Positions 37,945 through 41,728 of a stretch of DNA of 64,000 nucleotides are shown in pieces. The DNA comes from Trichoplax adhaerens (Eukaryota; Animalia; Placozoa). The position numbers were made by a program, and so were the translations under genes. The notes beneath the pieces are model-generated. The model was not told the origin of the DNA, searched no databases, and was given only the letters and a program-made list of their open reading frames with translations. How positions within the stretch are numbered: position 1 is the stretch's first letter; every line of letters begins with the position of its first letter. The stretch covers positions 1 through 64,000 of the forward strand of contig NW_002060957.1 of the NCBI RefSeq assembly GCF_000150275.1. Direction: 5' to 3'.

Positions 37945-40900
37945 ATGGCGATGCCAAATAAACCTCTAAAAGGTACCCCTGAATTCCAAGCTTTAAAAGC
38001 ATGCCATATGAATCTGATCTATACCATACCTACTGATGATGTACTCCATCAATTATTTGAAAAAGGCGTTATACCGGTTGATTTATTAGTTGGACAGGGT
38101 GTAGCAGTACCTTTCGAGAGGGCTAAAAATGAAAAATTACTCTTGCAGATTTACTCTGGTACTTTAGGAGATTTTTACACATTTTTAAGTGTATTGTGTA
38201 GTAAAAACTGTGTTAACAAACAGCCAAGTATTCGCTTAAAAGAAGAGCTACTTAAAAGAGGAATCGATGTGGAAAAAAGCAGAACAGGTATCCGTTATCG
38301 TTCAATATTGACAACATGGCCGTTGCTATTCTATTCCTATTTATCATGTTTGTATTAGAAGATCCAATTGTAATATATACGAGGCAATAGTTGAATAATA
38401 AATAATATTGTCAGTGCTGATTATGTTCATTTTCATCTTCTGCTGTAATTTTTTATGATATTATAAGATTAAGAACGTCTCTAAACTTAGTCGCATAGAG
38501 GAAGCTTTTTGTTTACACTTTACTAGGAAAATAGCATTACTTGCGAATTCTTTTGATATTCATTTCTATTACAAGAATGTAATAATCACCTAGACTATTC
38601 CTGGACAAATTCTTCTCGTCATTTTAATATTTTACATCTACCGCATAAAATTGTATCAAATATATTTTAATTCGACAATCGCCAACTACAGTTTGTCTTT
38701 CATTACTTCTATCTTCGCTACCTTACTTCAATATCTAACCACTTACTATACCTTTACTACCATTAGTAGCCATTAATCATAATGATATAATTACCTTCGT
38801 ACTATTTTACTCTAAATTAGTAATGTCCAACCAATAAATTTCATTATCCGATACTGCTGCGTTGGTACAGTACTTGCTTTTACGTTAATATTTATCTAGA
38901 CTACCGACCAATCGACAATAATTAGTCATTACCCCACTGCGGCTAAACTATAATCGAATTCACACTTATTTCAATGTTTAATTCTTTGAGTACGAAATAG
39001 CTTTATCAACGCACTAGGAAATCTCACTACAGTATAACTTTCACATGGTTTGCAACATGTTAATAATCTAGTGCATTTCAAGCAGAAGTGAAGGTGATCT
39101 CAAACAAATTAAGCTTCTAAAAATTGTAGATTATATAAGAGTAATTAAAATATACATAACCTATATAATATATTGTTAATTAATTATCGCCTTGCTACGG
39201 TACCTTGTTGTGTTGATATTCAGTGCATTACTCATATACTTGGATATTTTTCTTGATTTTTTGGATACTATTTCTCTAGTCGAGAAAAGATACGATGTTC
39301 ATTAATGATTTAATACTTTAGTTTTATGCCGTATATTAACAACGCAGTTGTTATTTCTATGAGTACGATGGGGAAAAAAATTGGCTACTGCCACTATAAT
39401 ATTTTTATGCATTTCGTGAACCCAAAGGAACGTGATTCGTCTAATTTGTCTATGGTTCAACTGAATTAAATAGAAACAAATTCTCGTTTTAGTTTATTAT
39501 GCTAACAGTTATTGTACTGATTTAAAGATCCATATAAAGAGATGAGGGTGGAACCCTCTGAAGTTTATGTGTGGGGAAGTAAACGGAATTTACTCTTGGC
39601 GGCAGATGAAAAGGTAAGGCAATTGACGTATGATTAGAATCAGAGCCGTGGGGCTTATCAAGTATGGTAAAATGCCTGTAAGCACGTATTTGCAATCATT
39701 CTGACGGTAGATTAGAATTCTATTCAGGGTCTAATTAATAACTGATTACGGTAGTGGGCATTCGTTATTTACTGTGATGTATATTAAAGATTTTCCAAGT
39801 TGCGTTATCCTATACGAACGTCATCGTACTTTTACTGTTTCCATTTCTCATAACATCGGAATCACCGTTGAGAATCATTATATCTTATTAACATATCGTG
39901 CAACTTCGTACAGTCGTATTTCAAATCACTATAATTTGGATCTGTAAGAGATTTTCGCAGTTCACTTTGTCTACTAGAAAATGTGATTATTGATGGGTAT
40001 TTAATATACGTAGAAGCACATCCCATATTGGGATTTGAAGAATAATTGTGGTAAGGGCAATTAGAGAAGATTAAATCGGTAGTTAATATATTACTTGGGA
40101 TTTTAATTGACAGAATCCGCTCGAACCTGATAAAAGTAAGCTACTAGAAAATCTGGATCCATCTGATATCGCTTGTGGATATGACTCCTTGTTTGTTGTT
40201 TCGAGAAATGGTGGCATTTTTGCTTGTGGTAAAGGGCATATGGGCTGTCTTGGTTTAGGAAACTGCGATGATGTTAATGTACCTAGACAGATTCCCCAAC
40301 TTTTACCAGTGATGGTAACCACGGTCGCTATTCATCCAGGTGGTAGACATGCAATGGCTCTAACAGCCGAAGGTAAAGTTTATTCGTGGGGTTGCGGTGA
40401 TCGCGGTCAACTCGGCCATGGAAATACGCTGTAAGAAGCAAAAGATACTATTTCTAATAATTTGTCGCTTCGATATTCGATAATTAATTATTATATGTGT
40501 ATAACTTTAAATTTTAATTCGGCGAGTAAGCCAAAGATAATAGTTATCCAATTCTATTTTACTAATGTATCCTTTTCCGTGCTTTCTTGGTTATTGTTAG
40601 AGGATATCTGGACCCTACATTGATTGATGAGTTAAAATCAAAGGAAGTTACGAAAATTGCCTGTGGAGCAATGCATAGTATAGCCGTACTATCGGATGGT
40701 AAAATATTTAGTTGGGGAGATGGTTCAAACGGAGCATTAGGTCATGGGAATAACCTGGCGCAACTACTACCGAAAAAGGTAAATATTAATCGCTTAAATA
40801 ACAAGAAAATTTTCCGGGCATTTTATTTGCCACTAACTCCTTGTAGCTTACTTTGTCTAAATTATTGATTCGATTTTTTCTTCGTTTTCACTTTGCAAAA

Positions 40901-41728
40901 GATAATGTCGTTAAACGGCAAGCATATCATGGCTGTTGCTTGCGGAGAATGTTATACTATCGCGGTAGCTGGTGATGATGTTTGGTCATGGGGCCTTGGT
41001 GGCAATGGCGAATTAGGCTATGGAGTCGAAATGCCATCATACTATATGCCTACAAAAATTGAAGCCCTCTTCTTTAAAGGTATAACAAATGTTGCTTGCG
41101 GCTATGCAACATCTTTTGCAGTGAGTGCGAATGGGAAGGTTTGGGCATGGTACGTTATCTATTAACCAGATCTAACCATAATTGCAGTCAATCCTGTTTT
41201 ATTTAGACGTTAGCGTTCGCCTACTTTATCAAGAAAGAAAGAATATAAGTTCAACATGACAGAACAGTACTTTATTTCATTTTTTGCAGGGGTTCTGGCG
41301 ATCGTTTTAGGCTAGGACTTGGAAATGAAAAAGTAATTGTAAAGCCTAGGGAAATTCAAGGTGATTTAAAGGGTAAAAAAATCAAAAGAGTAGTGGCTAG
41401 CTTGTTCCATGCGTTGGCTATAGATGAAAATGGACAGGTAAATCAACTATGTTATATCATGACAGAAACACAAAAGCTTTAATTTGCTATCAGAATGCAT
41501 GCGGAAATAAAATAAATCTCGAATACCTCATCCGTCTACTAACATTTCTTATCGTTTAATTTCTACCTAACTTTTGCTATATAGGTTTACATTTGGGGTA
41601 GTCAAGAAATTGGGCCGGTAGGAAATGATGAAGATGCGGTTAATAAACAACCCAAGAGCTTTAATTTGGTCAATAAGAAAATGTCTAATATAGCTTGTGG
41701 TAATGAAATCTCGATTGCCTGGACATAA
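37945..41728 (+). CDS. Putative CARD-like death-fold + RCC1-like (HERC2 RLD-type) beta-propeller protein, ~487 aa, 7 exons
   Basis: Exons: 37945-38287, 39528-39613, 40114-40430, 40601-40778, 40902-41149, 41290-41437, 41585-41728. All introns are GT-AG, all phases are compatible, and the total is 1464 nt with no internal stop. Exons 2-7 carry RCC1 motifs (EVYVWG, VAIHPGGRHAMALTAEGKVYSWG, IACGAMHS, VWSWG, VWAWGSGDRFRLGLG, VYIWG..IACG..SIAWT*). Exon 1 has a CARD-like helix pattern. The RCC1 part is certain; the exon 1-2 join is predicted. Confidence 0.75.

Follow-up and report, generated by a model that had tools for sequence, protein, structure and literature searches.

A seven-exon gene of Trichoplax adhaerens pairs a highly divergent CARD with an RCC1-like propeller of the large-HERC type

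Within the window analysed here, a stretch of 64,000 nucleotides from Trichoplax adhaerens (contig NW_002060957.1), the plus strand from 37871 to beyond 42200 is a single expressed and conserved seven-exon placozoan gene, the product of which begins with a highly divergent CARD and continues into a predicted RCC1-like propeller. We consider it reasonably likely that the product of this old gene, in which a CARD is combined with a HERC-type propeller, acts in signalling as an adaptor or a sensor of the NOD-less kind. The initial annotation knew of no described CARD-RCC1 protein. Our search of the literature likewise found no description of a protein in which a CARD is paired with a HERC2-like RCC1 propeller; a survey of placozoan immunity (PMC6321704) lists none, and RCC1 is absent from its supplements.

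The gene had been proposed as seven exons that assemble into an uninterrupted protein of ~487 amino acids. Joining the exons (37945–41728) with a local script yielded 1464 nt, that is 487 codons and one terminal TAA, and every intron was of the GT..AG type (Table 1). The splice sites of the first intron are also as claimed, with a phase-1 donor (ACAG/GTATCC) at 38287 and an acceptor (TTTAAAG/AT) at 39527/39528. All six GT..AG junctions were found in contigs from RNA libraries. The joint between exons 1 and 2 (38285 to 39526, cut +2, GT..AG) was present at the predicted sites in two RNA runs of one study, X5 (depth 71) and X12 (depth 191), with 28+2 letters on its short side. A single X12 contig of 1962 nt carries the last 30 nt of exon 1 followed by exons 2 to 7 and runs into the 3' UTR, and the 3'-most X12 stretch covers 41583–42200 plus 339 further letters. 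The exon 1 contigs of X5 and X12 start at 37871/37875 and end exactly at 38287, a branch in the assembly graph at which the spliced and unspliced paths part; no RNA contig lies on 36300–37870. A short upstream ORF (ATG at ~37906, stop TAA at 37930–37932) is present in the 5' UTR in the frame of the coding sequence.

Table 1. Positions in the window of the parts of the CARD-RCC1 gene and of its partial duplicate
Feature	Position	Strand	Evidence
Copy A, partial gene duplicate (second half of intron 1 and exons 2–7)	5316..8042	+	
5' UTR, transcript start ~37871–37875	37871..37944	+	RNA contigs X5, X12
Exon 1 (E1), coding part: residues 1–114 and one base, phase-1 donor	37945..38287	+	
Intron 1, 1240 nt, GT..AG, phase 1	38288..39527	+	Joint 38287/39528 in RNA runs X5, X12
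Exon 2 (E2), linker and predicted first propeller strand, ..VYVWG.. signature	39528..39613	+	
Exon 3 (E3), RCC1 repeats	40114..40430	+	Pfam RCC1 5.5e-21; RNA joints
Exon 4 (E4), RCC1 repeat	40601..40778	+	Pfam RCC1 1.3e-15; RNA joints
Exon 5 (E5), RCC1 repeats	40902..41149	+	Pfam RCC1 3.2e-13; RNA joints
Exon 6 (E6), RCC1 repeat	41290..41437	+	Pfam RCC1 1.6e-4; RNA joints
Exon 7 (E7), last RCC1 repeat, predicted closing strand ..IAWT	41585..41728	+	Pfam RCC1 1.6e-4
3' UTR, continuing past 42200 in the X12 contig	41729..42200	+	RNA contig

Exon 1 encodes a highly divergent CARD at about residues 7–107, as the initial annotation had suggested from its helix pattern. The AF2 model (pLDDT 79.6) is a six-helix antiparallel death fold with a split helix 1 (H1a/H1b), the helices lying at residues 12–19 and 21–27 (the broken helix 1), 30–39, 45–49, 56–70, 74–84 and 93–104. 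Structural matches to this model were consistently CARDs. In VIA all 50 of the top 50 entries were CARDs, the best being that of Apaf-1 (2.3 A over 92/93 residues) at Z 13.1, a zone (Z ~13) where helical bundles can match through arrangement alone; in Foldseek the best 24 matches listed (probability 0.9–1.0) were CARDs except for rank 8, a de novo designed protein. CARD clusters were also among the ESM Atlas look-alikes. At the level of profiles, the exon 1 profile (A1) matched 19 PDB entries, each weakly (E 0.03–0.8) and each a CARD, that of RAIDD among them. The Pfam search found no family at E<=1 for exon 1 or for the corresponding exon of a paralog described below, and neither exon reached the gathering score of Pfam CARD (PF00619; 23.9 bits).

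Relatives within the same genome connect exon 1 to accepted CARDs. A search of the genome with profile A1 recovered 12 exons, eight of them new, and Pfam CARD was the best match in six of the new ones and above the gathering score in two (L015, 37 bits; L016, 27.9 bits). The profile reached L015 at 4.9e-8 and L015 in turn reached Pfam CARD at 3.5e-9; overall, relatives of exon 1 scored 16.9–37 bits against this family. When the CARD-RCC1 clade (A2) was aligned by hhalign with six same-genome exons having Pfam CARD as best match (A3; two of the six over the gathering score), the probability was 97.2% and the E-value 3.7e-11, hence profile-level homology of exon 1 to accepted CARDs is significant. 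A phmmer search with exon 1 alone among 1.84 billion representative proteins matched only two. One (P0001) is an ortholog of the paralog's protein, and the other (P0002), a repetitive bacterial protein, was rejected as a repeat-driven false positive.

It could be argued that exon 1 is a degenerate death-fold remnant or a generic helical bundle that no longer makes CARD-CARD contacts and might, for instance, cap the propeller of its own molecule. The absence of a Pfam match, the identity of only 11–21% to solved CARDs and the range of the Z score would fit such a role. We nevertheless regard it as very improbable, since the top structural and profile matches are specifically CARDs and not DD, DED, PYD or other bundles, the structural match spans nearly the whole domain, the hhalign result is significant, and the exon is under strong purifying selection. 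The last point comes from two orthologous exons (P0003 and P0004) that are 79–83% identical to exon 1 and retain the phase-1 donor. Against these, dN/dS was 0.045–0.054 with dS above 2. A word-indexed search with exon 1 in a length window of 63–200 aa returned only the two orthologous ORFs, each of 120 aa; the contigs that carry the orthologous exons (L005–L009 and L023) end before exon 2.

A second CARD+RCC1 gene was located on the minus strand of contig C1412, at ~8.350–8.356 Mb. It consists of a CARD-like exon followed by collinear counterparts of E2 to E7, with donor phases 1, 0, 2 and 2 at matching places and a stop directly after the propeller. Because this paralog shares both module order and intron phases with the gene in the window, the fusion is old and predates the split of the two paralogs. 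A phase-1 intron separates the CARD from the propeller, and the gene may have originated by exon shuffling. The two paralogs differ in their linkers, that of the C1412 gene being strongly acidic.

A second, incomplete version of the gene, copy A, also lies in the window; it is 92.9% identical and has no CARD exon; the boundary of the segmental duplication falls inside intron 1, at 39166. Exon 4 of copy A has lost 3 nt and is altered at two residues of a glycine-rich repeat motif, and two 1-nt deletions in exon 6 cause a frameshift and an early TAG, changes that mark it as probably a pseudogene. The RNA contigs over exons 2 to 7 were considered as possible products of copy A and rejected as such: at nearly every diagnostic site they show the state of copy B, the seven-exon gene, and they have none of the deletions of copy A. 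With a boundary placed inside intron 1, a recent shuffling of the CARD exon by segmental duplication was likewise considered. We rejected it because the duplicated block also reaches upstream of the CARD exon (30786–32354 corresponding to 3–3814), because copy A is frameshifted, and because the distant paralog is already fused.

Mean contig depth was ~30 for exon 1 and 191–379 for E3–E7, about 6–12 times lower for exon 1, although contig depth cannot rank parts of one gene. Retention of intron 1 is partial in the RNA libraries, with unspliced contigs at a depth of 5–44, and an in-frame ATG is present at 39542, 14 nt from the start of exon 2. Together with the missing CARD exon of copy A, these features could be read to mean that the main product is a propeller-only protein, initiated at this ATG or transcribed from a promoter within intron 1, with the CARD exon a lesser 5' alternative that carries little functional weight. 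In our judgement there is little chance that this is so. Besides the limit on what contig depth can say, the RNA contigs revealed no alternative 5' exon or loose end at the exon-2 acceptor, the low dN/dS of exon 1 and its conserved phase-1 donor would make no sense for a dispensable leader, the independent paralog keeps the CARD-first architecture, and copy A itself carries a frameshift. Owing to the lower depth of exon 1 and the visible retention of intron 1, a shorter, CARD-less product from the ATG at 39542 may coexist with the full-length protein.

Exons 2 to 7 are predicted, from sequence comparison, to form a complete, closed seven-bladed RCC1-like propeller of the large-HERC type. Pfam RCC1 repeats were found in each of E3–E7, and in the joined frame WG/WT blade signatures recur about every 52 residues. 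Collinearity with HERC2 RLD2 and RLD3, claimed earlier for exons 2 to 7, was upheld for E3–E7; E2 alone (28 aa) had no match in the PDB. Against HERC2 RLD2 (7q40_A, 405 residues), E3 aligned to residues 46–145, E4 to 153–206, E5 to 211–290, E6 to 293–340 and E7 to 341–388, and against RLD3 (3kci_A) the same exons ran collinearly from 47 to 385 of 389. The earlier suggestion that the gene ends with the propeller also held, as only three residues separate the last blade from the stop TAA at 41726–41728, beyond which lies the 3' UTR; the frame thus has no HECT domain or giant HERC layout. Between the two modules is a linker of ~20 residues and no other unassigned residues. Because CARD, linker and propeller occupy all 487 residues, there is no room for an NB-ARC or NACHT domain, and neither had a Pfam match in any exon.

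RCC1 is a guanine-nucleotide exchange factor (GEF), and the propellers of RCC1, RPGR, RCC2 and RCC1L were all significant matches in the PDB. The propeller might therefore be an RCC1-type GEF for a small GTPase, which the CARD would only position at a CARD assembly, making the protein an effector or regulator and not a sensor. This seems unlikely to us, as the best PDB matches were consistently the propellers of HERC2 RLD2/RLD3, HERC1 and UVR8, and HERC2 RLD2 has been shown to be a peptide-binding module with a DxDKDxD ligand motif (PMC13748646). Within the genome, the nearest RLDs are those of HERC1- and HERC2-like genes. Binding of DxDKDxD in the manner of HERC2 RLD2 was itself considered and rejected, the pocket not being conserved. 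Among the pocket residues of the RLD2-mut set (PMC13748646), seven could be placed and five, in E2 and E3, could not; of those placed only R297 is identical (1/7), the differing positions being K292 to S, Y295 to R, R222 to C, D344 to S, D346 to E and H347 to I. Because most of these residues differ, a propeller ligand other than DxDKDxD would be expected.

The predicted protein resembles several known systems in part. With the apoptosome proteins Apaf-1 and CED-4 (CARD, NB-ARC and WD40) it has the N-terminal CARD in common, and with Apaf-1 also a C-terminal beta-propeller, which in Apaf-1 is ligand-sensing. It differs from Apaf-1 in having no NB-ARC/NACHT oligomerisation ATPase and in the type of its propeller, RCC1 instead of WD40. 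Like the RAIDD/CRADD adaptors it would be a small, two-module protein with the CARD first; in those adaptors the second module is a death domain, whereas here it would be an RCC1 propeller of 370 residues. Every RCC1 exon had its best sequence matches in HERC2 RLD2 and RLD3 (and the HERC1 RLD), with which the propeller is collinear from its first blade through its closing strand, but unlike in HERC1 and HERC2 the propeller stands alone, with neither HECT nor another HERC module. A single seven-bladed RCC1 propeller is also the main body of RCC1, UVR8, RCC2 and RCC1L; to our knowledge, none of these has a death-fold domain. To RCC1 itself the propeller is clearly less similar than to the HERC RLDs.

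The reading we prefer, that of a NOD-less adaptor or sensor, would work as follows. The propeller would bind a protein, a peptide or another ligand, and through CARD-CARD contact the CARD would attach to one of the numerous CARD proteins of the same genome, the candidates being Apaf-1-like NB-ARC proteins, CARD-caspases and a RAIDD-like adaptor with a CARD and a death domain. In this way the recognised ligand would be tied to cell-death or innate-immune signalling; the protein probably makes such a link with no nucleotide-binding module, and a sensor or adaptor role in immunity or apoptosis may be envisaged. In a bolder version, the two ancient paralogs would be NOD-less "CARD-propeller" sensors specific to placozoans: when a ligand binds the RCC1 propeller of HERC type, the CARD would be exposed or clustered as a direct result, which would seed CARD assemblies and activate caspases. 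Such a protein would amount to a minimal device resembling an apoptosome or inflammasome but needing no STAND ATPase; we hold this version to be rather doubtful.

Placozoans, which rank with the simplest animals, have no canonical LRR-NLRs, RIG-I-like receptors or cGAS-STING and possess a large repertoire of Apaf-1-like and CARD proteins, including many Apaf-1 paralogs and CARD-caspases (Kamm et al., 2019; PMC6321704). A conserved protein in which a CARD is wired directly to a peptide-binding propeller of HERC type would give this network a new input branch and would show death-fold signalling coupled to a sensor module with no nucleotide-binding oligomerisation domain. Since Pfam does not see the CARD, the protein would be listed in architecture databases simply under RCC1, and it thereby illustrates how many fusions of death-fold domains may escape notice in animals that branched early. 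At 487 aa and with two modules, the protein is small enough for the binding partners of each half to be directly testable.

Possible partners are present in the genome, which contains 11 caspase matches and 43 NB-ARC matches, one of the latter 2 kb from a CARD-like exon. In the CARD-caspases of this genome the CARD is split over two exons. No recognisable domain was found downstream of one CARD-like exon (L004). The RAIDD-like candidate is L003, the genomic CARD nearest to exon 1 outside the CARD-RCC1 pair (E 3e-4), behind which Pfam finds a Death domain (2.9e-6).

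The gene read in 37700-42000, within AT-rich eukaryotic DNA (GC about 30-38%), comprises seven exons separated by introns that are all canonical GT..AG. Joining E1-E7 by script produced 1464 nt and 487 codons with one TAA, at the end only, and the joined frame displays WG/WT blade signatures at a spacing of roughly 52 residues. The CARD, the propeller and a linker of about 20 residues between them leave no residue unassigned. Position 37945 is the first possible start of the coding frame, because the ATG is preceded in frame by a TAA (37930-37932). The 5' UTR contains a short upstream ORF at 37906-37932, which consists of an ATG, 7 further codons and a TAA and shares the frame of the main CDS. 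Taken jointly, the gene model and its domain identities are held with very high confidence.

Exons of the CARD+RCC1 gene and their matches on HERC2 RLD2 (7q40_A, 405 residues; structure-sequence search)
Exon	Position	Strand	Basis of position	7q40_A residues
E1	37945-38287	+	sequence reading	
E2	39528-39613	+	sequence reading	
E3	40114-40430	+	sequence reading	46-145
E4	40601-40778	+	sequence reading	153-206
E5	40902-41149	+	sequence reading	211-290
E6	41290-41437	+	sequence reading	293-340
E7	41585-41728	+	sequence reading	341-388

Transcription was checked over 36300-42200 in two recorded RNA libraries (X5 and X12, both from one study) and two smaller public runs (X18 and X19). All six predicted junctions were present in the RNA contigs as GT..AG joints. 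The E1/E2 joint, given as 38285->39526 and equal to 38287/39528 when cut two places further right, was found at depth 71 in X5 and at depth 191 in X12; hence, the splice proposed in the initial annotation is borne out. A single 1962-nt contig of X12 includes the final 30 letters of E1, crosses E2-E7 and enters the 3' UTR; a short side of 28+2 letters is expected for the joint at a branch of a k=31 assembly graph. The E1 contigs of X5 and X12 extend from 37871 and 37875 and end exactly at the donor 38287, while an unspliced contig begins at 38258 and intron 1 is visibly retained. Since no contig from any of the four runs fell within 36300-37870, the signal represents RNA with a start near 37871 and not contaminating DNA. 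The lower mean depth of the E1 contigs relative to those of E3-E7 leaves room for a CARD-less isoform, though contig depth cannot rank the parts of a gene. One X12 contig carries 11 letters (GTACCAGAGTA) ahead of 37875 that have no match to the genome there, and the X5 contig starts at 37871 without them; they may be leftover adapter sequence or an additional 5' segment.

The initial annotation had also ascribed a death fold to exon 1. Pfam returned no match for this exon, its CARD threshold not being reached, and a phmmer search of 1.84 billion proteins with exon 1 alone yielded nothing beyond one relative of 165 aa and a bacterial protein, the latter rejected as a false positive. Within the organism's own genome (a 105.6-Mb assembly of 1414 contigs, with the gene on contig C1400), three relatives were identified: L002 (E 2e-10), L003 (E 3e-4; a Pfam Death domain follows), and L004 (E 0.93; Pfam CARD 20.9 bits). 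Two orthologous exons from other assemblies are 79-83% identical. A seven-row alignment of exon 1 and its relatives (A1) was used in four tests. (i) Against PDB sequences, 19 of 19 matched chains were CARDs, among them an Apaf-1-based design, MDA5, RAIDD, caspase-9, BCL10 and ICEBERG, each match being weak (E 0.03-0.8). (ii) The AlphaFold2 model (pLDDT 79.6) is a six-helix bundle with helix 1 broken in two. (iii) The best 24 Foldseek matches listed for the model were CARDs except rank 8, a de novo designed protein; VIA-align superposed it on the Apaf-1 CARD with Z 13.1 (2.3 A, 92/93 residues), and its best 50 entries were CARDs without exception. (iv) Against the genome, the profile recovered 12 exons, eight of them new; Pfam CARD was the best match in six of these, and two cleared the gathering threshold, at 37 and 27.9 bits. 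A profile restricted to the CARD-RCC1 clade (A2), aligned with the six exons whose best Pfam match is CARD (A3), gave 97.2% probability (E 3.7e-11), and the ESM-Atlas look-alikes of exon 1 include CARD clusters. On these grounds exon 1, as judged from sequence and modelling, is classed as a divergent CARD below the Pfam threshold.

RCC1 repeats were recognized by Pfam in E3-E7. The best solved-structure match, searched exon by exon, was nearly always HERC2 RLD2, E5 alone scoring higher on UVR8. The E3-E7 stretches are perfectly collinear on RLD2, and the same exon order on HERC2 RLD3 (3kci) reaches residue 385 of 389, in agreement with the earlier description of a HERC2-RLD-like propeller stopping at the domain end. 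Entries 7Q40-7Q46 represent RLD2 with bound DxDKDxD peptides (PMC13748646). Using the offset from the printed alignment (7q40_A chain index = paper number + 2), seven pocket residues could be placed through the collinear stretches: K292, Y295, R297, R222, D344, D346 and H347 of RLD2 correspond to S, R, R, C, S, E and I, respectively. Thus, the two propellers share the fold but not the DxDKDxD ligand pocket. The genome's nearest RLD exons come from two sources: a HERC1-like open frame combining WD40 and RLD, and a multi-exon locus on C1410 rich in RCC1 repeats. The former (L024, G000:C1400:300500-306500, 445-3717, +) is intron-free, at least 1090 aa long and shares its contig with the window, 265 kb away; its WD40 repeats precede a full RCC1-like domain in a HERC1-like arrangement, and it probably represents a single giant exon of a HERC1 orthologue.

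Block 3-10835 is a copy of 30786-45988 (93-97% identical, five collinear pieces), in which copy A of the gene (5316-8042) matches 39166-41941, from mid-intron 1 through exon 7. In the upstream copy, the 6.8 kb containing the CARD exon (32354-39166) has as its counterpart only 1.5 kb of unrelated sequence. Copy A has a 3-nt deletion and two altered residues in the glycine motif of exon 4, and two single-base deletions in exon 6 that cause a frameshift into a TAG; from its sequence it is most likely a 5'-truncated pseudogene. Because copy A is damaged and the RNA contigs carry the intact-gene states at nearly all sites diagnostic against it, the functional gene is the one with the CARD. Copy A was rejected as the origin of any recent exon shuffling, being a truncated, frameshifted duplicate. 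The downstream block has an extra 1.2-kb piece (41941-43147), and the duplication takes in part of the region initially annotated as a 'mini-PABP' (45198-46301). Between the two blocks, 16500-29650 is occupied by an extended array of nested tandem repeats, with an assembly gap at 23196-23245; the units measure roughly 250 and 500 nt and resemble one another at 66-94% identity, and higher-order copies span 2-5 kb.

Exon 1 compared with the orthologous exons gave dN/dS of 0.045-0.054, with dS saturated (above 2); between the two orthologous exons the value was 0.14, and the phase-1 donor is kept. L002 proved to be part of a second gene on the minus strand of contig C1412 (L010, G000:C1412:8347000-8356999, about 3595-8744), where a CARD-like exon ending in an acidic tail precedes E2- to E7-like exons in the same order, with donor phases 1, 0, 2, 2 at corresponding places and a stop just past the closing strand. 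Measured against the window gene, this paralog is about 30% identical over the CARD and 27-46% over the blades. It follows that the two modules were fused long before the paralogs diverged. CARD-profile and RLD-exon searches of the genome revealed no other CARD-like exon adjoining RCC1 exons. The tail of the paralog, strongly D/E/S-rich and lacking from the window gene, runs up to the donor and could serve as an internal pseudo-ligand for the propeller.

CARDs act through homotypic contacts, and no NB-ARC or NACHT domain was detected by Pfam in any exon of the gene. The genome contains 43 NB-ARC matches, one of them 2 kb from a CARD-like exon, as well as caspase matches. Many Apaf-1-like genes have been reported in placozoans (PMC6321704), and the closest solved propeller, HERC2 RLD2, is a peptide-motif binder (PMC13748646). 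The CARD might contact the CARDs of Apaf-1-like, caspase or RAIDD-like CARD+DD proteins, so that a bipartite adaptor or sensor would couple a propeller ligand to CARD signalling, a role we propose only tentatively. Alternatively, the product may mostly lack the CARD, the propeller may be a GEF positioned by its CARD, or the CARD may no longer bind. No description of a CARD+RCC1 protein turned up in the literature search, and the placozoan immunity survey (PMC6321704) does not list one, in keeping with the initial view of this architecture as undescribed; domain databases would not display it even with the gene model present, because Pfam misses this CARD.

The CARD closest to the CARD-RCC1 pair is that of L003 (G000:C1412:9271850-9275170, minus strand), a RAIDD/CRADD-like CARD+DD adaptor with its CARD-like exon at L003:1405-1830 and a Pfam Death domain exon (2.9e-6) about 700 nt downstream. 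A cluster of near-identical caspase genes (L021 and L022, G000:C1408:4594000-4606200) has N-terminal CARD-like sequence divided over two exons, and a further CARD-like ORF pair lies there on the opposite strand, beside another caspase match.
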